From the NCBI RefSeq assembly GCF_963853765.1, contig NC_088854.1, positions 20,522,001 to 20,586,000 on the forward strand: DNA of 64,000 nucleotides, given 5' to 3'. Positions 6,331-19,682 of this stretch are shown here, one piece after another (within the stretch, counting starts at the first letter, position 1; each line of letters starts with the position of its first letter). The notes beneath the pieces are model-generated. The model saw nothing but the letters and a program-made list of their open reading frames with translations, did no database searches and was not told the origin of the DNA. Made by a program: the position numbers and the translations under genes. Origin of the DNA: Magallana gigas. Its lineage: Eukaryota.

Positions 6331-7181
6331 TTAATAAAACCGATTTGGTTTGACTTTTCCGATCGCGTCGCGTTCAACTTTTTCAGCTACGTCATACATA
6401 AACAATACCCGCACCTTAACCACAGTTTTTTTATTGGTGGATTCAGCTTACCGCTGATTGGCTGCTGGTTAACTAAGACTAAATTATGCACGGACAGAAC
6501 AACAACATATCAGAGAATGAAAAATTCACATGGGTACTCGTGACTGTCGAAATTGGGCTATTTTTCGAAAGTGTACACTTGTGATAAAACAATACATACG
6601 GTACATAACATATATAGCTGTAGCTCTGTGTATAAATTTTGGGTTAGAAAATATAAAGCTACAGTGCATACAATACTTACATGTACAAAAAAACTTTACG
6701 GCAATTTGCCGCGTATAGAAATAACACTATTTTTTGAAAATATTTACATCATACCATACCACATTTTGTGCAAATAATCCATTTAAATAATTCTTCATTT
6801 AGTTTACTACTGTTAATAATTGTAGCTTTACCCGCCCCAAACTTTCTCCTATTAAACAACCTTTAACCGTACTCGGAAAGCGGATCAAGAACTGTATTTT
6901 TATGTATGTAAACAAACCAGTGTTCATGTATGGAGCGGGTGATCGGGGGTTCAGAGACAGGTAAACACATTTATTGACTGTCGATTGCCGATCGAAAGGT
7001 GTAGAAATCGAGGAATTCATACCTATCACTTTGACTGGCAAGTTAGTAGGTAATACATGTGCATTATACATTTACGGTATTTACATGAAATGAACGCTTA
7101 GCACATGCAACTTTTAAATATTATATTTTTTATAACGCCGTACTCTGGACCGTAGCTTGAGGCTATGGTTTAACGCCCGTT

Positions 7182-7231
<50 letters not shown>

Positions 7232-7475
7232 AGCACAGAATTTAAACATACGGGATAGTCGATTTTGAATGAATAATATTGGGGGGAAATAAACTGTTCT
7301 GAGAAATCCTTCAGCTCTGGCATTGCATAAGCGTATACTGATAACTCGGCCTAAAAATAGGAGTTAACCAATCATATAGTTTTCACACCGGCGGCGTGTA
7401 TAATTTATGCATGACGTAGCTGACAGAAATGATCGTGACGCTATAGGAAAAGTCAAACCAAATCGGTTTTGATAA
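6331..7475 (+). mobile_element. MITE family X, copy 3 (internal ~180-bp deletion)
   Basis: TA|TTAATAAAACCG...CGGTTTTGATAA|TA. Near-identical to copy 2 except that the segment matching ~5096-5275 is missing at ~6965. Confidence 0.85.
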
Positions 7476-9637
7476 TAATATTTTTAAATGTTATTTTTAT
7501 TCTATTTTTTATAGGCCCGTTACCTAGGTAACTAAATGTATTCCTCAATATATATTCTGAGTTTAAACACAGTATATCATTATCTGTTCACCTCAGAGAG
7601 TAGATTTGCGTGAATAGAGATGGTCTATTAAATAATATTTTGTCACCTTAATTCCACTAAAAACGAATTTTTTTTCAAATGAAAATGTGTATAATATAAA
7701 AGTACGTGCGCCGCCATTGTTAACGTGTAAAAGACCCTATCGAGTTCCATCGTAATTGCTGTCTCTGTTCATTTTCCTAAAACGTTTTCTTGTTAGCGAA
7801 CACAGAGGAATGTGTGTTACGGATCACTCAAATATCAACGCCGTCATCGTCACACACTTCTTTCTTCATGATATAACGCTAACCTAAGAAGTGGCAGGAT
7901 AAGATGTTCAAATTCCATCACTGTGTTGTACTGAAGAGTAACAAGGTCAGACGACGGGTAATGGCTGATTATAATTAGAAATAGTGCTCGAATTGAAGTC
8001 AGTCCACATATATATATGATTGGAATCTTTATCGATGTCGTTCAACGTTTACAACAATCATCAATTAGTCTTGTATAGCTGCACTTAAGAGAAATAGGTC
8101 AAGAATATATATTATACAATATTTTGTATCTCTTTGTTGAAATCCTTGCATGGGTGTTTTTCGTTTAAATATGCACATCAATGCTCAAGAGAGTGTAGGA
8201 TCAGTGGGACGCTTCGATCGAAGCAATTGAATACAAAATATCAGAGAAAAAATCCAAAGGAAATATTGTAATTAAAGAAGGATAAACATGTGTAGAAGAG
8301 CATGAATTGTAGTGAATTGACAGATAATGTGAGTTTTATAATCCTTTGCTCAGTTTGATTGACTTCTTGATGTAAACTATTGAAACATATCGGCAATGTA
8401 TGATTGGGCTTTGCGTCATAAGCTTGATGCCCTATATACACATTAAAGGATTGGCCTCTTTCAAACATACAATTTGTTTTGACATTGAGTTTATATGAAA
8501 TATAGATGAACTGCTGAATACACAAGCTGTGTAGACAAAATATACAGGCTCTATATTCAATAAAAATTCAATAAAGATCATTTCATCTTTTTTTCTAACT
8601 ACAAAAATTGCTACACTGATTAATTCTTAATTTTTTTTTCATTATCACATTGGATGAATATTTCTCAACAAACAAATAAACAAAAAATTTAAGAAATTAT
8701 GAGAACATGCCTAAAATATGTTTTGGGTATGTTGTAAGTAAAAAAAAAAAAGAAGTCACGTGATCTCACCTGGAGACAATGTGATCTAAAATAACGTTGC
8801 TACTTTTGATCGAGAGAAGAGATGATAACCTAGATTAATAAAATGGTTGACGCCATCAATACAGCTACTTGATTATTTACACATTAAACTTTTTGTCCAT
8901 AACACTTAACTGGTCATATTTTGAATTAAAAAAAATATTGATCGATGTTTCTTATTCAGTATAATTATGTTGATCGAGCGAATAGATTCAAACATTTGCT
9001 GAAGGAAAACTACAAAATGTTTTTCATCATTTATAGTATTCATTTAGTCGCATGAGGCGCATGAATACCAGTATAGAAAAATATAAATCAATAAAGTTAC
9101 TTTCAATAAATACTCAAACGAAATACATAAGCGTTATTTCCTCAAATATACTTTTTATAATTTGATATTGAAATTTCTATAAAAATAAAAAAAAAATGAA
9201 ATGAAAAAATATTTTTTTTTTAGATCGAAAAAGTTAAATGTTGATAATTTTTGGAACAAAAAAGTGTTGTTATTCTGCTATTTAACGATTAAGTAATTAA
9301 CAAATGTAGTATATAATTAAATTCAAAGATAGTAAATGTTTTAATTACAGTCTCTGCCGACTCGTGAACAATGATGACGTTTTCTTTGATATCAGATTAA
9401 TAATACATGTATGTAGATTCGAAAATTCAGTTTTCAATTTTTCCATTATCTGTTGTGCATGTAATAACACATATAGGAATTGTAAATCCTTTTCTCATCT
9501 TTCTGATACATTTCTACTTTTTAATTGAATGTACAAATATTAGTCCATATTGTTTTGAAATTATGATCACACTAAACATAAAAGTATTCGACACGAGATA
9601 ATCACATTTACATTGTGAATTTGTTTAATAAAACAGT

Positions 9638-12600
9638 CTAATATTTAGCTTTGTCGTAATAAGAGCTTCTCCGTTGGCTGTAGTATAAATCATTCTGAAA
9701 ATAAGAATAAAAGCCCACATGAAAATCTTGAAGAGTTTATGCGCCTCCAAATCGGATCAATTAAAAGTGTATGACAAAAATAGCTATAATTAAATCAATG
9801 AAGAGGTAAACTTAAAATGTATTTTTGACAAGGCGACTAATATTAATGTTAGGCAATTTTCAAGTGCAGTTTTAAATTAATGTTAATTGATTATATTGAT
9901 AATTTTCATACCATATAAATGTTGGTAGATCCGGGTTTTTTACTTGCGGTATTTGGTTTCGAATTTCGATTTTTTTCGATAGCAGTAAATGTAGACAAGA
10001 AATAACAGAAACAATATTAATAGAGCTGCAACTATACCAACGTAGATGAAGATATTGACGTATTCTGAAAGTAAACATTATTAGAAAGAATCAGTTTGAT
10101 TCTAGTTTGTTCTAAATACGCAAGAACTCGGGATTGTATACAATTTTCCCGAAGTCGTTTACCAAGTACTTTTAAGCCCTTGATACAATAAAGAAAAATG
10201 AATACAATAAAACCTCGATGATAGTAAAGTGCTAGGGACCAATAGATTTACCTTTTTATATCCGTATTTTGTTAATATATCCGTAAAACGAGTTCGCAAT
10301 AATAACTATAGCGAATTTACTATATACATGGATTTTTTTTCACCAGACTACTGAAGCGGACAGCCTATTAATATATTTTTGGTTAAAGTTATTTCCCTTT
10401 GATTTATTGATTTTTGATGATTCAATTAATGTTTCCAATAATAACCAATTAGTGTGATGATTATTTGTTGTACAATATTAAATATTCTATGTAAATAAGT
10501 TGTTTGGCATAAGTAGTTTTATATTAGGTTGGATCAGTTTGTTTATTTTTGATTTCCAGTTTTTAGATACTTCAAATTATTTTAGGCCGGCACATATATA
10601 GGGACAGTGTCTATGGCGATTTTAGGAAAACGACTGTTTGGGGTTAAACTTAGACAGGTACGGCTAGATTGAGTGTGCGGACATCCCTTTTTTTCTAATC
10701 TTCGTGTGACTTAACCTACGATACAGAGTGTGCGGTCATCCCTGCTCTGTATCGCATTAATACAAGTGTGCGGTCATCCCTGCTTGTATTGGTGGTGGTT
10801 GAGGCGGAGCACTAGCGTGTGGTCATCCCTGCTGGTGTTCTGGTCTTTCTAACGCAAGTGTGCGGCACTCCCTGCTTGCGTTAGGTTGCGTTGTTGGCGC
10901 AAGTGTGCGGTCATCCCTGCTTGCGTTAACGTTGGTACCTGTTTAGTTGCGTAGGTGTGCGGTCATCCCTGCCTGCGTAACGTTGAGTCCCTATATATGT
11001 GCAGGAGCGGTGATTTAAGTCTGCACTTGTAAATATTGGCAGCAATCAGGGCTATCCGATTCTATCTCGGGTACGGGCCCGCGGGGATCACAGGCAGTGA
11101 CCCCCTTGCACGTTACATAAAATTTGGTGGCAGCGGTGGGATACCCTGGAATTGCTGCAGAGAGGGAGAATGGAGGACATTGACAAAGACATAACCTTTC
11201 TACGGGAGAAGATTGCGGAGATGCGGAAGCGCAGCGACATGGAGACATCAACCCCAATGATCAGAGGTTTTGAAGGGACCACCATGCGCAAAGACGAGGA
11301 ATACCTGTGCGATCATCACTCTGCTAATGAAACATATGCAAACCCGCGCAGCAACGAGATGTTTCCTGACTATTTTGAGCTGTACAATACGCCAAATAGG
11401 AAGACGAGTCATTTGCCAGAAAAATAAGACACTTGGTCTTTGCACAGAGCTGATGCGTTTGGGAAATCTAGGGAAAGGTTCACAAGCCCCGAGATAAGTA
11501 GTACACTGGAAGATGCCTACGAATCGCAAAATTCCATTATACCAGCTACCTATGATGGCAGTGGTCAATGGATCGATTACCATGCGCACTTTGAAGCTTG
11601 TTCTGAAATAAATGGTTGGAGTTACGCTACCAAAGGTCTCTACCTGGCAGCTTCCCTCCGAGGCAGTGCACAAGGATGTCTTGGCAATATCCCAAAGGGT
11701 GAAAAACCAGACTACGAAACACTTGTGTTAGCTTTGGAAGATAGATTTGCTCCACCAAGTCAAGCAGAGCTCTACAGAGTGCAAATGCGAGAGCGTCGTC
11801 AGAGAGCTGGTGAAACTTTTTCAGAGCTGGGACAGGCCATTCAGAGACTTGCAAACATGGCATACTCAACTGCCACTTTTGAATTCAGAGATATGTTAGC
11901 CAGAGATCACTTTGTGGACGCGCTGGACAATTCTGAGGTGCGCATTCGTATACAGCAATCCAGACCGAGAAGCTTGAACGATGCAGTGAAGCTAGCTGTT
12001 AAATTGGAGGCGCACCGAAGAGCAGAGAGGAAATGCTATGCATGCCATCTCAATGTTGAGCCCTCATCTGATAAGCTAGTGGAACTGGTAAAAGCACTGT
12101 CTGCTAAGATCGAGTCTCTCCAGACGGATTTGAGGGATTTACAACTTCAACGCAGCAAGGATAATGCACAGGATACTGTCTCATCATCTAAACGTAGGTT
12201 ATGCTATTTTTGCAGAAAACCGGGACACCTGCGGAGAGATTGCGTAGTGAGAAAGCAAAGCAAGTCCAAGCAATTAAGAAGGCGGCGTAGAAGTAGAGCA
12301 GAAAACCTGACTTGTAAAAGTGATTCCAGTTACAGTGGAAAGAATTCTCGTCAACATAGTGAACCCCAGAACGGAGATGTAGCACAGCATCGACTTGCTG
12401 AAGACTGTTCCAATGGATGCTACCGCGTAGTTACCGTAGAGTCTATGCCAATCCCCACCGACAGAAAAATGGTTAAGGACCAAGTTCGTTGCGAGAAGAT
12501 TATTGCAAACAGCTCCAGTGTTACGGTTGGCAGAACCCTAAAGTCAGCTGAAGGCAAAGAAAAGGACCCCGAGTGGAAGTTGGCCAGAAGATGCAAGAAT

Positions 12601-15600
12601 GGTCGCAGGCGCAAAGGCATGGAAAGAGGATCTCCTGGTATTCGCTGTAGAAGAGGCAAGAAAAGTTCGTCCGAACAGTTGAGACCCCACGGTAACGTGG
12701 CAGATGGCAGCAGATTGCAGGCATCGGATAATATGCCTGGTGAAGTCACAATGCTGGGAATTCCTGACTTGAGAGAGAGTCAGATGTTCCACAAGAGGTG
12801 GAAGACGTCTAGTGCAAGACGGAAAGTTGAAGTGTAAAGCTTGAGGTGATACAATGCAATTTGTGTCTGTCAGCTGCAGTTGTGCTATGTGCACGTGGTC
12901 CAGGAGAGAAAGGGCCAGATATTTTTTTCTTATTGTTTATTTTTTGGGGGAGTATTTTTTTTATATGGATATCACTTCACCTTTTTGTGAAGTAGGGGTT
13001 AGTTTTTAGTTTTGCGAGGACGCAAAATTCTGAGGTGGGGGTAGTGAAGCGGGCAGCCTATTAATATATTTTTGGTTAAAGTTATTTCCCTTTGATTTAT
13101 TGATTTTTGATGATTCAATTAATGTTTCCAATAATAACCAATTAGTGTGATGATTATTTGTTGTACAATATTAAATATTCTATGTAAATAAGTTGTTTGG
13201 CATAAGTAGTTTTATATTAGGTTGGATCAGTTTGTTTATTTTTGATTTCCAGTTTTTAGATACTTCAAATTATTTTAGGCCGGCACATATATAGGGACAG
13301 TGTCTATGGCGATTTTAGGAAAACGACTGTTTGGGGTTAAACTTAGACAGGTACGGCTAGATTGAGTGTGCGGACATCCCTTTTTTTCTAATCTTCGTGT
13401 GACTTAACCTACGATACAGAGTGTGCGGTCATCCCTGCTCTGTATCGCATTAATACAAGTGTGCGGTCATCCCTGCTTGTATTGGTGGTGGTTGAGGCGG
13501 AGCACTAGTGTGTGGTCATCCCTGCTGGTGTTCTGGCCTTTCTAGCGCAAGTGTGCGGCACTCCCTGCTTGCGTTAGGTTGCGTTGTTGGCGCAAGTGTG
13601 CGGTCATCCCTGCTTGCGTTAACGTTGGTACCTGTTTAGTTGCGTAGGTGTGCGGTCATCCCTGCCTGCGTAACGTTGAGTCCCTATATATGTGCAGGAG
13701 CGGTGATTAAAGTCTGCACTTGTAAATATTGGCAGCAATCAGGGCTATCCGATTCTATCTCGGGTACGGGCCCGCGGGGATCACAGGCAGTGACCCCCTT
13801 GCACGTTACACTACAACTGTAGCTGATCCAGGCTTAGAATGAAAATACATTCTTGTGATACCTTTGATGATCGGATTGTGAATTGAAGAATCAATCTTAA
13901 AATAAACACAGGATGAAGCTGTGGCATTCAGTCAACTGACATGTAACTGAAAGGTAACATTTAGTTGACTGAATGGCATATCTATGCCAATCAGTCACCA
14001 TTCAAGACATTTCAGTTAACATTTAGTTGACTGAATGGCAGAGCTTCATCCTGTGACAGTCATTCTAACTAATATGATAAATGGTAGTGCAAAATTTTTA
14101 AAACTGTTATAACTTTGTTATAAAAGTGTTAAATTGGTATATGATAATATGCTTCATTTTAAATTTGAGAAAATTCGGTAAATACATGTATGCATACCGA
14201 CCCTCAAATACATGTGTCTAAATGCCTACAGAGAATGGCTCTTAAATGTAAAGCATGTTTTGGAGTTTTGAAAGATACTTACCATTGGTATTTCCCTTTG
14301 GAGATTCCCTTCAAAATATTAGGTTTTAATTTATTTTATTATTCAGAATATATTTTTACAGTGTATATAATCATAACTTTAATCATTTAAGCATCACCCC
14401 TTTTAGCTGCAGGTCTTTAGCTCTCAGTCTGAAAAAAATTGGATGCAAAACCTGGGAGCTACAGTGCACCCCGCACCCTCAGTAAAAAAACAGCAATTTA
14501 CGGCGTGCAAAAAATTATGCTCTAGATTTGGTTTGAATAATCTTGTTTCCGAACATTTTCTGTAAAAATATTTCATTCCAAAATATTTCTTGGACAATAT
14601 TCTACGGATATCGTTTCTTAACGTGCCTCTGATATCGCTTTAAACAATATCACCAGCCCCGTTTTGTGAAGCGATGCAGTTTGTTTACATGTAAAAATGG
14701 TGAATTGATTCTGAAAAAGTCTGAGGCTAATAAAGAGTCGATATGAGTAGAAACAATGGCAAAATATAAATAACCATATCAAGAATGTTCAAAATATGTA
14801 GGTTATTTTGCTTACCTACACACAGGTCCATTCCTTGTTTCTGCACACACGTGACCGGGTAGACAAGGACTCACTTGTTTTTTAAATTCGCATGATGTTG
14901 TACCGTTTTCAACAATCACTTGACATAAGAAAATTTACAACATTATTATTTGATTAACATAGTTCTTAAGTTCACGAATCCTTATTTCATTTATTTACCA
15001 TTATTTTTAATTTTTTTTGAAGTTGTGATAAAATCACGAATACTACATGTATACTTTGTTCCAAGTTTCGGCTTCCCCCACTTTCTGCGTTATATAATGT
15101 ATCTCGATAATCATAAATCTTAAACTACATCTATTCACTATAAAAAAAAGTTCCGATTATCTTAACTGAAACACCCCTCTACCGCTTTAGGTTTCAATAC
15201 ACAACCCAAAATAGAAAGTCTGACAGGATTTTGCCTTGCAAACAACATTAAGAACCCCGATTGATCTGCGAGATAGCCCGAGAACTTCCGAAAGGGCAAA
15301 AATATGTAAGCATTTCCCATTTTGAATCTCTGTAGGATTTTTGTTTTTGTTCATGAGGAATTCTTCGGAGATAACCAGATAATGTTTTAAAGAAGAAATC
15401 TTGGATATTTTCTCTTTTATGTATTTGATTTGTACTTTATTGACAGGTATTTTTTAAAATAAAAAATCATCGGAAAATGACCAGAGCAATTACTTGGGAC
15501 AGACTATATAGAAACTAAGGTGAAATGAGGTGTAAGGCCTTTAATATATATTTTTTCATTTGAATTCTTGGTTATCCAATATGCAACTTAGTTAACTGGA

Positions 15601-17092
15601 TAAGTTCACTTTTTTTGCCGTATTGCTGCAATTTAAGTCAACTTAAAAGATTTTGTAGATTTCTTATAGTTTTGTTTTCAAACAACAAAGCTGTGACACT
15701 CATTTATAAACATAAATAAAATTGACAGGTTTTTACTTTTACGGTCAAGCAAATGAAAGGCAATTTACGAGCTTTTCCTGATGTGTCCTCAAGAATTACA
15801 GTCGATACAGTCACTTCCTGTCCTTCATACGTCACTTTAGATTTCCCTGTAGCCATGTTTTTAGAGAGGGCTGTCATATTGGTTATTAACTGTGAATCTA
15901 TTGCTGTGTCAACATGATACTCAACTTTTAAGCTGCCTTTTCTACAACACATTCACAGATAAAACAAGATATCTGTGAGCCAATGCTCACTTGTAATACC
16001 CCCTCTCTAATGTGAATATGCAAAATAAGCAAAGTCGGCATTTAACAGGAAGTTTGCATCTGATTAGTATAAAAAGTATCCCACGATATGGCATGGCCAA
16101 AACAGTGTGTTAAAATTTCAAGCATCTGCGATAAATAGTTGGTAAGAAATTTTTGACGAAAATTTGTTTTGAATTTTAGGGTAAAATTAGACAAAGTCGT
16201 CATTTAACAGGAAATTGACGTCCGATTGGTACAACAAAATATCTCACAATATGGCATGCCTAAACAAAAAAGTGTAAAAATTTCAAGCATCTACAATGAA
16301 TAGATGCTGAGAAAAATGTGAAAGAAATTTTTGTTACGGACAGACAGACGGACAAACAGACGGACAAACAGACAGATAAACAGTATACCCCCTTCTCCTT
16401 CGGAGCAGGGGTATAATGATGTGTACGCGAAAAATTGACCAACATATTCTGTTAAGGGGATTAATATGTTACGTGTACATTAAATTGAAGATAATCTTCT
16501 ACGTAAAAGATTAGTATAATAATGTAGAATGTGAGAAATATAATATAATATACAAACCTTATGTTTCGTACAGTACAGCTTATGAATTTCAAACCGTTAA
16601 TGCTATAAAATGAAGTAAGCTGAAAAGTACAAATCGAAAATGATTTCAAGTTGTGCAATAATGATGATGATACGCATGCGATACATGATAGAATTAAATA
16701 AATCCAAAATGTTCGTAAAAATTCACGATGTTTGAATGAAATAATTGAAACATACATACTGCTGCTTGGACTTTTGACCTAACACTTTCGTTTGCATCAT
16801 CATCTGACAAATCATCTGTTATATCAATCAACAAAGTTATTTTTAATCTAAACACAAAAGATGATTTCTGCGTTGTAAGTGGTTTTTGCGTTGTAAGTGT
16901 TTTTTGCGTTGTAATTTGTTGGTAATGTCGTTGTTATAACTGTGGTTTTGCAAGGGTTATTGTACTTGGTGGTTGGTTTCTGTGGGGGTTTGGTTAGTGT
17001 TGGACCACTATAACATGTTCCACAGCAAACAGAAGGATTAGCCGGACAAATAAAAATATAACAACCAGAAGTTCTGTCTCCATACTCACACC
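9638..17092 (-). CDS. 3' exons of the metalloprotease gene: Cys-rich repeat, mucin stalk, SEA, EGF-like, TM, cytoplasmic tail
   Basis: GT-AG exons: 17092-16760 (GCEYGDRTSGC...TTQK repeats...SFVFRLKITLLID), 16620-16559 (LTSFYSINGLKFISCTVRNIR), 15941-15769 (KGSLKVEYHV, SEA-like), 14918-14816 (CEFKKQVSPCLPGHVCAETRNGPVC), candidate 13895-13862, 10064-9912 (YVNIFIYVGIVAALLILFLLFLVYIYCYRK, TM), 9694-9638 (NDLYYSQRRSSYYDKAKY*). Four of these match paralogous exons at 61101-63646. Two apparent +1 frameshifts (~16915, ~9973). At least one small linker exon is unassigned. Confidence 0.8.
10719..10981 (+). other. Array of six stem-loops with a conserved 16-nt loop in the 5' LTR
   Basis: Loop consensus TGTGCGGTCATCCCTG, each closed by a different 6-10 bp stem. 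A degenerate seventh unit lies at ~10665-10701. Confidence 0.9.
11125..11142 (+). promoter_or_regulatory. Primer-binding site complementary to a tRNA-Leu 3' end
   Basis: TGGTGGCAGCGGTGGGAT, 7 nt after the 5' LTR. Reverse complement ATCCCACCGCTGCCACCA matches the eukaryotic tRNA-Leu 3' end + CCA as I recall it. Confidence 0.75.
11170..12837 (+). CDS. gag: Gag (capsid-like + CCHC knuckle + basic tail), one in-frame stop at 11425-11427
   Basis: Track ORFs 11152..11427 and 11440..12837 are in the same frame. Motifs YDGSGQWIDYHAHFE and LCYFCRKPGHLRRDC. No protease, RT or integrase motifs. Confidence 0.9.
13412..13674 (+). other. Same stem-loop array in the 3' LTR
   Basis: Direct copy of 10719-10981 (offset 2693). 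An A-to-G change in stem 5 keeps pairing as G-U. Confidence 0.9.
13907..14055. mobile_element. 149-bp palindromic MITE-like element
   Basis: TIRs CACAGGATGAAGCT...CATTCAGTCAACT / AGTTGACTGAATGGCAGAGCTTCATCCTGTG, with internal repeats of AGTTGACTGAATGGCA. No TSD resolved. Confidence 0.65.
15961..16417 (+). mobile_element. Helentron-type non-autonomous element (HINE-like) with two ~162-bp satellite-like units
   Basis: Start AAAACAAGA...TGAGCCAATGCTCAC. Repeat units begin at 16031 and 16193. (GACA/GACG)n at 16337-16376 and terminal hairpin ATACCCCC...GGGGTAT at 16385-16414. Lies in a SEA-domain intron. Confidence 0.75.
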
Positions 17093-17468
17093 CTAATGAG
17101 AAAAATTAGATCACACAAATAAACATTGAAGTTATATATCTGCATATAGCATTTTTGGCAAAGTAATATTTTTCAGCTATTATAATGGTTTTTATTTAGT
17201 TACTTATCTTTACAAAGTTTGAGATTTAGAGTCTTTCCATACCATTGAAATGACAAGCAACGCTTGTCTATACTTTAAAGTAATAGTCTTGGCAAGAACA
17301 ATTAGCCCATTAATTCTTTATCGCTTCCTAGTTATGGAAAATGTGGGTGGAAGGTCCGAGACAATTTGAAAGTTTCTAAATTTTAGAATAACAAAATTTG
17401 ACCCAGAATTGTACGTAGAAGTGATTGTTTGGGTTGAAAAAGCAGGTAACTCTCAAATCGTTTCAAAC

Positions 17469-18254
17469 CTGCTATTCCGGTGTAGAAGTGTCTGCATTGC
17501 TGGCAACATTTGTCTTTTACGTAATAACAAACCCATGGATAATCACTTATGTCCTCAAAAGAACAAGTGATTTCTTTACTGCTATAAGTCATGACTACTC
17601 CTTTAGCATCTCCTTTAGCTCGCATGCAATCATAAGCGTCAAGTAGTGCAAATGCAAAAGTAGTGCAAATGAATCACAAATAAGTTGTTTATGGGCCACA
17701 TATTGCTGACCATACTAACTTGCAAACGTAAAGAGGGTGTTTCCAAGGTAAAATGTTTAAACCCCATTGTGTCTCCTATTTATACCTATTGTGGTTTATG
17801 ATTGAAAATTTCGGACTATTCTTAAAACATTTACTAGTATTTTTATGATGAACATTTGGAGTTATTTTCTCAGCTCGCTCTGAGATTCTTTGCAAAAACA
17901 GATTTAAATCAAACATCTTGTAGAAAAGTTATATAAAGGTTTTGTGAAGAGATTAAATAAAACTGACTGTTTTAATCTTAAAAAGAATGTTCCACAATGC
18001 ATGTATCTTAATTGTATTGTTTCAATTAAACGAATAAAGGCAATGCATCTTAATAAACATAATATTTGATTATCCAAAATGCTGTGTGTCAGGTTACGAA
18101 AAAAATATCAGCAGTTCTAAAGAACATATACACGTGACTGAAAACTGAAAAATGTTTATTTAATGCAGGTACGTTATTTCTTTTTGAAATAACTAAAAAA
18201 AAGGCATAAATATAAATAAAATATGTATGCAGAAGGCCTTTTATTCATGAATAT
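17469..18254 (-). pseudogene. Eroded duplicate (copy B): Cys-rich exon lacking its acceptor, plus two deletion junctions
   Basis: 17469-17625 matches exon 39672-39830. 17627-18135 matches intron 42170-42668. 18140-18254 matches 53522-53630. The intervening catalytic exons are absent. Confidence 0.85.
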
Positions 18255-18689
18255 AATACCATCTATTTTATGCATATAAAATCGATGACTTTATTTTACG
18301 GGAAAGGGTTATCTTAATTTTGGTCGGGATCGGCCTGCGGCCTTCTTTTATTATTTAAGTCTGGAAGCTCGGGATCAACATCCTTTTCCAAAAGTTGCTG
18401 AATAGGAGTAGGTTGAAAAATTGTATGGGAGTATTTTTTTTAAATTATATGCTGTAAAGTTCTTGCATCCGCCTTAAATATATATGAAATTTCATTAACG
18501 GATAGACAAGTTAATTGTGTTTTACATTAATTTTAATCTGGCGTCTATATTTTCTATTGATGGGGCCGGATTAAAAGCAGGGTGTTATCAGTAGGCACTA
18601 TACATATAATTTGTATTTTTTTTTTAAAAATCGTGTTTTTAATTTCAAGTGAGTTATTGTATGTGTATTGTTCATTTTAATGAGCGGAA

Positions 18690-19682
18690 ATGCCACCAAA
18701 AAATGATAAGCGGAATTGCAGACACCACGAGGGGAAGGGATCAAGGTCAAAGAGGTCAAGACCCGAGCGATCAGCTCCATCCACTGACGATCAGGCATCT
18801 CAGGAACCAGGTCCATCACGAAGCAGGGAATGCGCCATCGCAATAGAAAGTGAAGATGTGGCAACCGTGAACCAAAGTTTGCCCCCAACACCTGTTCCTG
18901 CTTTAGCTATTCAATCAGGTACAAGCATTGGTGTTGAAAGTCAATACGTCGATAGCATCCATACATTGTTATCTAGCAATGTCTCTAACTCATTGAAATC
19001 AAAAATTATCAGTTCGTCATACATTGACATTAGCTTATTGCTTGATAATACTTCTCTGACGGAATCTTCAGAGAAAAGAATATTTTTTAATGATAAGGGT
19101 GAGTTGGTCACAAGAGAGGTAGTTAAGCCCAGCATAAAGATTCAATCTATCAGTAGATGGACAGGTGCATTTTTAGTTTATGCAAGTATCTATGCTTCGG
19201 CCCATCCAGAATCTTTTCAAGGTCTTCTGAAATATTTGCATGACATTAGACTAGGGGCATCAAGATGTGGGGAGGGAGATTTGGGCTGGAAGAAATATGA
19301 TGAACAATTTAGACTTCGCCGCAGTATCGATCCCACCAAACAATGGTCTAAAGTAGACTATGAGTTATGGTTGATGTTTATGACATCATCTCCGCAATCT
19401 AAAGTTACACTTAGCCCAAATAGCCCAGCATTTAACAAGTGCTATAATTTCAATTTCAAGGGAATTTGTGACAGACCGTCTTGTCAGTACATGCATAAGT
19501 GTATAAGATGTTCAGGGGCTCATCCACAATACCAGTGTCCCCTTTCTAACCATGTGTTCAAGGCCACAAATCGCCCCAGGGCACCATTGCAGGGACAATC
19601 CCAGTTTAGACCCCCTGTGTCACACCCAACACAAACCCCAAGACCACAAAGATATATGGGCCCTAGGAACTTCCCCTATTAG
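18690..19682 (+). CDS. gag: Ngaro gag-like ORF1 with C-terminal Cys/His finger
   Basis: 330-aa ORF with CYNFNFKGICDRPSCQYMHKCIRCSGAHPQYQC. Overlaps the RT ORF as in DIRS/Ngaro. Confidence 0.85.
   Translation: MPPKNDKRNCRHHEGKGSRSKRSRPERSAPSTDDQASQEPGPSRSRECAIAIESEDVATVNQSLPPTPVPALAIQSGTSIGVESQYVDSIHTLLSSNVSNSLKSKIISSSYIDISLLLDNTSLTESSEKRIFFNDKGELVTREVVKPSIKIQSISRWTGAFLVYASIYASAHPESFQGLLKYLHDIRLGASRCGEGDLGWKKYDEQFRLRRSIDPTKQWSKVDYELWLMFMTSSPQSKVTLSPNSPAFNKCYNFNFKGICDRPSCQYMHKCIRCSGAHPQYQCPLSNHVFKATNRPRAPLQGQSQFRPPVSHPTQTPRPQRYMGPRNFPY

Follow-up and report, generated by a model that had tools for sequence, protein, structure and literature searches.

An array of hairpins with a constant core in the long terminal repeats of a gag-only Ty3/Gypsy element of the oyster Magallana gigas

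The element and its hairpins

The window analysed here is a stretch of 64,000 nucleotides (nt) of contig NC_088854.1 from the oyster Magallana gigas (positions 20,522,001 to 20,586,000 of the forward strand); coordinates are those of the window unless another locus is named. It contains a 3,459-base-pair (bp) element bounded by long terminal repeats (LTRs) at 10352-13810, with a 4-bp CTAC duplication on both sides. Each LTR carries an array of short hairpins that share one constant core and differ in their stems, and the view that this array is an RNA structure under purifying selection is well supported by the comparisons presented below. The element is built as follows.

10348..10351, plus strand: left copy of the CTAC target-site duplication, with an identical 4 nt at 13811-13814
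10352..11117, plus strand: 5' LTR, 766 nt, ends TG...CA, 5 differences when aligned to the 3' LTR
11125..11136, plus strand: TGG... stretch resembling a primer-binding site, after a short spacer 3' of the 5' LTR and common to family 2 (see below)
11170..12837, plus strand: gag, with a capsid-like core, one CCHC zinc knuckle, a basic tail and one in-frame stop
13032..13044, plus strand: polypurine tract, immediately 5' of the 3' LTR
13045..13810, plus strand: 3' LTR, 766 nt, aligned to the 5' LTR, with the seven hairpins at +2693
13811..13814, plus strand: right copy of the CTAC target-site duplication, matching the left copy

Paired TG...CA LTRs, a short duplication, a primer-binding site and a polypurine tract place the element among the Ty3/Gypsy elements, as does its Gag, which combines a capsid-like core with a CCHC knuckle and is kin to Gypsy Gag proteins. 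The zf-CCHC match in this Gag scores 20.3 bits, slightly below the 20.8-bit cut-off. The longer open piece of the interrupted gag is 95% identical to an uninterrupted protein of 565 amino acids (P0001). The window Gag has 115 relatives, many of them with aspartic protease and reverse transcriptase fused; these relatives are Gypsy Gag proteins of bivalves, the closest named ones being from Magallana gigas. A search for gag in IMG/VR gave no matches.

The protease-reverse transcriptase-RNase H-integrase pol was not found in the window element, whose 1.9-kb interior has the Gag-like protein as its sole coding content, with no pol after gag. A related element in the M. gigas assembly GCA_963853765.1 (L213) has two long open frames in which Gag, protease, reverse transcriptase, RNase H and integrase follow in this order. 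The LTRs of L213 and of the window element share 92-93% identity and the same seven hairpins; the two Gag proteins are only 63% identical. Because pol is absent from the window element while this partner has all pol domains in order, the window element is classed as non-autonomous: it is a gag-only member of a Ty3/Gypsy (Metaviridae) family of an oyster host. The gag-only layout is common to two independent short contigs, L001 (94% identity) and L002 (91%), and this recurrence, together with the target-site duplication in the window, indicates that the family moved as a gag-only element. Both contigs and L214 look like genomic assemblies; these three and L222 end before the array. The window element thus belongs to a family of gag-only dependents whose LTR is shared with an autonomous Ty3/Gypsy element.

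The constant 16-mer of the hairpins, or a close variant of it, occurs seven times in each LTR. Elsewhere in the window it is approached by one site only, with three mismatches (chance expectation for the window, 0.14 matches). Each LTR holds six intact hairpins (H1-H6) and one decayed hairpin (H0).

10664..10701, plus strand: H0, decayed, with two changes in the core and a small deletion that breaks the stem, 36 bits with covariance model R1 (see below)
10719..10754, plus strand: H1, 10-bp Watson-Crick stem and constant core, -17.4 kcal/mol, z = -4.3
10755..10794, plus strand: H2, 12-bp stem with 2 G-U, abuts H1, -14.9 kcal/mol, z = -4.6
10805..10842, plus strand: H3, 11-bp stem with 3 G-U, -20.4 kcal/mol, z = -4.2
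10848..10885, plus strand: H4, 11-bp stem, apical loop unlike that of the other hairpins, -17.1 kcal/mol, z = -3.9
10892..10931, plus strand: H5, 12-bp stem with 3 G-U, -18.8 kcal/mol, z = -4.2
10946..10981, plus strand: H6, 10-bp stem with 2 G-U, -17.2 kcal/mol, z = -4.7
13357-13394, 13412-13447 and 13448-13487, plus strand: H0-H2 of the 3' LTR, the same hairpins at offset +2693
13498-13535, 13541-13578, 13585-13624 and 13639-13674, plus strand: H3-H6 of the 3' LTR, the same hairpins at offset +2693

In the 5' LTR, the ungapped stems of H1-H6, with G-U allowed, are 10, 12, 11, 11, 12 and 10 bp long and contain 11 G-U pairs and no other mismatch. Folded individually, these six hairpins reach -15 to -20 kcal/mol, with z-scores of -3.9 to -4.7. 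H0 is better preserved in L213, where it folds with -9.9 kcal/mol (z = -2.3). The first core base of H3, C in the 5' LTR, reads T in the 3' LTR, and either pairs with the last core base. An earlier reading of this DNA by a model, from the sequence alone, had listed six hairpins; all six lie where it placed them, with stems as long as or longer than it gave, but the seventh, decayed one had been overlooked.

Predicted structure, covariation and selection

The sequence-only reading had described the 16-mer as a conserved loop. Both RNAfold and RNAalifold instead predict that the stem runs on into the 16-mer and ends in an apical loop of 3-4 nt, such that the supposed loop is not open but largely paired, forming an irregular extension of the helix. 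In the predicted core, base 1 pairs with base 16, base 2 forms a wobble step with base 15, and one U and one C are bulged; inward of the bulges lies a G-C pair, followed by a GG/CC mini-stem closed by a 4-nt tip. Closed by A-U and G-C pairs, the module has a U-G/G-U wobble step, two bulges of one base each, a G-C pair and the GG/CC mini-stem. The mini-stem, which had been noticed from the letters, is present in all loop variants and is predicted by RNAfold to pair. In the RNAalifold alignment, core bases 1 and 16 are U-G in 12 rows, U-A in three and C-G in one, and the tip is free to vary. In these models, each unit is shown as a 10-12-bp stem of free sequence, an invariant irregular helix and a small variable apical loop.

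Covariation was assessed on an alignment of 18 distinct hairpins from five LTR sources, with a 12-pair stem. In this stem, 84.7% of cells are paired. Column shuffles give 61.8%, with none of 500 as high as the real alignment, and slid registers give 30.6-51.4%. Two-sided changes are found at 11 of the 12 stem pairs, and the covariation score is 0.68 (0.24 in the control). Moreover, RNAalifold independently recovers the same helix, extended into the "loop". The array thus combines conserved structure with compensatory change on the transcribed strand, and the earlier statement that the stems differ in sequence yet all pair agrees with these figures.

The nature of the imperfect pairs points to the same strand. 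In the true register, the intact hairpins contain 10 G-U cells, no A-C and no other non-Watson-Crick cell, as had been claimed for the gag-sense strand; slid registers contain 79 G-U, 40 A-C and 214 others. The whole array folds with -136.1 kcal/mol (z = -6.35) as sense RNA and with -85.9 kcal/mol (z = -1.03) as antisense. An A/G difference between the two LTRs in H4, also noted earlier, is real; both L213 LTRs have G at this position, and therefore the 5' LTR probably went from G-U to A-U.

A covariance model of the hairpin (R1, a 42-position motif) was used as a search profile. Exact-pattern scans of metagenome, prokaryote-genome and viral collections with a 17-mer gave single chance matches only, and these matches provided the negative control for R1: LTR hairpins score 36-56 bits, as compared with 15-22 bits for 37 chance occurrences of the 17-mer in unrelated DNA.

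The two LTRs of the window element and the two of L213 make it possible to separate differences between the lineages from later damage. A difference was counted as fixed where both window LTRs agree, both L213 LTRs agree and the two elements differ. The counts are as follows (U3, unique 3' region of the LTR).

Hairpins H1-H6: 1 fixed difference (G-C to G-U) in 228 columns
Interleaved spacers: 4 fixed differences in 70 columns
H0: 3 fixed differences in 39 columns
Upstream U3: 39 fixed differences in 268 columns
Downstream TATA-like box to LTR end: 0 fixed differences in 127 columns

By Fisher's test, the hairpins differ from the spacers with p = 0.012 and from the rest of the LTR with p = 4e-7. 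Changes private to a single LTR, which arose after insertion, show no such depletion in the hairpins (6 of 228 columns, against 9 of 504 elsewhere), and those in the hairpins include core changes and one A-C mismatch. Since private changes are not depleted, the mutation rate in the hairpins is normal, and changes were lost while the lineage was active.

A second family (family 2: L215, L219 and L221, three copies from one ENA assembly) retains the core on an otherwise different background. Its pol is 69% identical (the best match found) and its Gag core 54% identical, and its LTR cannot be aligned with the window LTR except over the last ~17 nt and the primer-binding site. This LTR nevertheless contains two abutting hairpins with the same stem-proximal core bases on different stems, one of 10 bp with one G-U and one of 6 bp. 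The centre of the core is 8 nt long in family 2, 2 nt longer than the 6 nt of the window array. Such a change of length is tolerable at the tip of a hairpin, not at a DNA site with fixed spacing, which favours an RNA hairpin. Across the families, the number of hairpins per LTR ranges from 2 to 7. Taken together, covariation, the G-U asymmetry, strand-specific folding energy, the deficit of fixed changes in the hairpins and core retention in family 2 bear out the earlier contention that selection on a sense-strand RNA, rather than duplication and drift, accounts for the array.

Several further observations concern the relatives. The first two intact hairpins abut with a start-to-start distance of 38 nt in both families (10729/10767 in the window, 14374/14412 in L215); this abutting pair may be an ancestral two-hairpin unit, and stem similarities give no simple one-to-one orthology. 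At L215 8700-23378, copies of family 2 are arranged head to tail with shared LTRs (LTR-interior-LTR-interior-LTR), with a period of 5,633 nt. L219, at ~9770, is without a 27-nt stretch just upstream of hairpin A (compare L215 14335-14362 and L221), and in L215 and L221 this stretch is itself a small inverted repeat. L220 represents a related family with ~2-kb LTRs (6489-8681 and 17180-19015) that contain 178-nt tandem repeats and no hairpin motif.

Place in the transcript and candidate roles

Three signals in the LTR bear on the place of the array in the transcript.

10595..10601, plus strand: upstream TATA-like box, inside a conserved island of 25 nt (window against L213) with variable sequence around it
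10991..10998, plus strand: downstream TATA-like box CTATATAT, in a 127-nt stretch without fixed difference from L213
11013..11018, plus strand: poly(A)-signal-like hexamer ATTTAA of the 5' LTR, which reads ATTAAA at 13706-13711 and in both L213 LTRs

The sequence-only reading had placed the array in U3, citing CTATATAT at 10991 and ATTAAA at 13706. Both motifs are present, and the 5' LTR counterpart of the latter is ATTTAA; the placement itself is not established, as a second box lies upstream of the array. The downstream box stands 15 nt upstream of the hexamer, a layout that would put the array in U3 and leave a very short repeated region (R). The conserved TATA-like box upstream of the array means that the array could be in R, and therefore at both ends of the RNA. 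The array is poor in A (15%), and long retroviral R regions are A-depleted and contain stem-loops, though their borders need RNA data (PMC3601003). U3 and R are about equally likely for the array. Under either placement, the sense strand has the array upstream of the poly(A) signal. At 10994-11031 there is a further hairpin, the eighth, which is unrelated to the others and has a loop of 16 nt (z = -1.0, not significant alone); the downstream TATA-like box overlaps with its 5' arm, and the poly(A)-signal-like hexamer lies in its loop.

In the account preferred here, the hairpins would act in the sense transcript of the element, with the constant helix as a docking site for one RNA-binding protein and the two to seven repeats per LTR as a multivalent platform on the full-length RNA. 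Because of its place before the poly(A) signal, this platform would be displayed at the 3' end of the RNA; were the array part of R, both ends would display it. The array is somewhat more likely than not to be a protein-docking, post-transcriptional signal. The preferred task would be the selection of genomic RNA for particle assembly by element-encoded Gag, through its zinc-knuckle region. Such selection would explain why an element that has gag alone and relies on the enzymes of a partner preserves the array with hardly a change, even as its gag and upstream U3 drift: compared with its partner, the array, R and the unique 5' region (R/U5), primer-binding site and leader are nearly unchanged, and gag and upstream U3 have diverged. 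Direct repeats are known to be unstable in reverse transcription, and the ready loss of long direct repeats in this process is the best explanation for the unlike stems; copies would persist only if structure was kept while sequence identity was shed.

The scaffold role suggested in the sequence-only reading (to bind Gag or a protein of the host, to serve export, or to allow packaging by a helper) would fit a gag-only dependent that shares the array with an autonomous partner. As regards strength, Gag-mediated selection of genomic RNA specifically is a tentative proposal that may well prove wrong. The statement as a whole (a selected sense-RNA hairpin array for multivalent docking, with Gag as the preferred reader) comes close to an even balance and stays just on the doubtful side. 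A bolder version is rather unlikely: the hairpins would be a modular "address tag" read by Gag, one small irregular helix displayed again and again on deliberately dissimilar stems so as to survive reverse transcription. The tag would single out RNAs for particle uptake, and the gag-only parasite would copy it in order to ride on its autonomous partner.

Several points weigh against the preferred account. The motif would not be a general need of the clade, because four related families (L216, L217, L218 and L220) are without it. The hairpins are paralogues, and the structure tested was derived from those same sequences; the slid-register and strand controls address this caveat but are no substitute for a large census. 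Few independent copies are available, namely two elements of family 1 and three of family 2. The G+T-rich composition weakens the G-U versus A-C comparison, for which p is ~0.02 against the slid-register ratio. Recent recombination between the two elements could be part of the reason why the 3' half of the LTR has diverged little, although the hairpin-versus-spacer contrast argues against recombination as the whole cause. The protein partner of the core is a guess. Finally, retroelements studied so far usually have their packaging signals in the 5' leader, and a position in U3 only would be unusual for packaging.

Docking by a host factor is unlikely in itself, and a host export or stability factor is nearly as likely as Gag. 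The hairpins would then resemble in their working the transport elements known from simple retroviruses and mouse retroelements, as a constitutive element, multimerised for strength, that promotes export, stability or translation of a retroelement RNA without introns. All of the structural evidence applies equally to this possibility. Export and stability elements usually sit near the 3' end of an RNA, and the position of the array near that end, just upstream of the poly(A) signal, suits such elements. In particular, the core is unchanged although the Gags of its carriers differ widely (window and L213 are 63% identical, and the Gag core shares 54% with family 2), and for this constancy a conserved host partner is the easier explanation. 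Against a host factor, the array has no match in Rfam, known transport and stability elements included, and related families in the same genomes do without the motif.

A role in reverse transcription is possible, if improbable: a long structured R could guide strand transfer, or the hairpins could provide, near the 3' end, contact sites for the primer tRNA that join the RNA ends, as does the bipartite primer-binding site in yeast Ty3. The conserved island with the upstream TATA-like box and the A content of 15% are consistent with long R regions (PMC3601003), and distinct stems would hold the repeats in register during strand transfer. Ty3, a member of the same superfamily, has two primer-binding segments in the 3' UTR (untranslated region) (PMC4974528). 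In the array, by contrast, the conserved bases are predicted to be paired in a helix and are not free for tRNA contact, a copy number of 2 to 7 would be odd for a register-critical R, and inspection by eye of the core against the leader and U5 found no complementarity beyond 5 contiguous pairs.

According to a DNA reading, the constant 16-mer would be a transcription-factor site in a U3 enhancer repeat, with the inverted repeats incidental or a by-product. Repeated U3 motifs are the classic enhancer layout, and part of the array registers as a 45-nt tandem repeat. This enhancer reading is nevertheless poorly compatible with the data and very improbable: an enhancer has no use for stems, whereas all six stems here pair through compensated changes; both the mismatches, which are G-U, and the folding energy are strand-specific; and family 2 retains the stem-proximal bases of the motif but has a centre of other sequence and length. 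Conservation independent of strand and of flanking complementarity, as expected of an enhancer, was not seen in the array. A possible likeness of the motif to composite sites for two families of animal transcription factors was set aside, because family 2 does not keep the relevant bases. The least probable explanation, close to negligible, is neutral tandem duplication of a palindromic unit, or a small-RNA source or target without a role for the element: some stems are indeed related by descent (H4/H5/H6; H1/H2) and H0 shows that copies can decay, but neutral decay should leave mismatches of the A-C and transversion types and bring the paired fraction to about the 62% of the shuffles, whereas H1-H6 are fully paired, fixed changes avoid the hairpins while private changes do not, and stems of 10-15 bp are short for known small-RNA processing.

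Other repeats are found in the window. Directly 3' of the element, a long palindrome at 13909-14053 looks like a small inverted-repeat transposon and gives weak matches on both strands to plant MIR807 (32 bits, against a gathering score of 113). Direct repeats of 162-165 nt and a 12-nt microsatellite at 16015-16383 lie downstream of the element and are unrelated to it. A second, unrelated gag-only LTR element occupies ~48436-51914 on the minus strand, in a G+C-rich region (0.50); its LTRs of ~200 nt stand 3,270 nt apart, and it has a TGG stretch resembling a primer-binding site and an open reading frame of 521 amino acids (48903-50468) with a zinc knuckle and a weak PNMA-like match. Visual inspection of its LTR alignment revealed no hairpin array.

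Relation to known systems

To our knowledge, little is known of the cis-acting RNA signals of LTR retrotransposons beyond yeast and the vertebrate retroviruses. Repeated structural motifs in RNA viruses have reportedly been the subject of a published study. Of Ty3 itself, a 2016 review states that the RNA structure was uncharacterised and that the packaging sequences were not precisely defined (PMC4974528). The array described here is an RNA module of an invertebrate Gypsy lineage that is compact, repeated and under strong constraint, and it is common to an autonomous element and its gag-only dependent. It provides a concrete handle on how dependents stay recognisable to their partners, may show how repeats stay stable through reverse transcription and, as a motif of 36-40 nt, can be searched for across mollusc genomes. 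If the address-tag version is true, nature would have its own equivalent of engineered hairpin-array tags, and a cis-acting RNA signal would be defined for the first time in a retrotransposon of molluscs, kept between families whose LTRs are otherwise unalignable.

The sequence-only reading knew of no described LTR element with this architecture, and searches of Rfam and the literature agree. A scan with Rfam 15 gave no match to the array at E-values up to 10, and no match in the whole window reached its gathering score; literature searches found no published description of such a hairpin array. ARAGORN found no tRNA in the window or in seven loci, and Rfam gave no 5S or tRNA match in the window.

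Partial likenesses exist to several systems. U3 enhancer repeats also place short repeated motifs in the promoter-distal part of the LTR; they are, in contrast, plain direct repeats read as DNA, whereas the array consists of hairpins with covarying arms and strand-specific wobbles. The Cassandra, Helenus and Ajax elements and the retrozymes are non-autonomous LTR elements with a structured RNA motif in the LTR; the modules of the first three are derived from 5S RNA or tRNA, and retrozymes carry hammerhead ribozymes (PMC10886601). These modules go back to cellular small RNAs or ribozymes and serve as pol III promoters or self-cleavers, while the present array has no tRNA, 5S or ribozyme match.

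Closer in kind are transport elements of the CTE, RTE and MTE types. Like the array, they are structured cis-acting RNAs near the 3' end of an unspliced retroelement RNA, with conserved internal-loop or irregular-helix modules on free stems; they are stronger when repeated and act through protein docking. No match to them in sequence or structure was found with Rfam, and the array differs in being a short hairpin repeated two to seven times inside an LTR, in a mollusc host. The packaging and dimerisation signals of retroviruses and Ty elements likewise offer short conserved motifs on several stem-loops to a zinc-knuckle Gag; these known signals sit in the 5' leader or in gag, whereas the place of the array is in the LTR, before the poly(A) signal. 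Dependent elements must carry packaging signals for uptake (PMC4974528). A similar sharing is seen at the 3' ends of LINEs and SINEs, where the dependent keeps its partner's small hairpin, with a conserved tip and a free stem, and is recognised in trans; here the element class and replication mechanism are different, and a single hairpin stands at the very 3' end instead of an LTR array. While standing outside every described RNA family, the array would, by analogy, work like the transport and packaging elements and like the hairpins shared between LINEs and SINEs.

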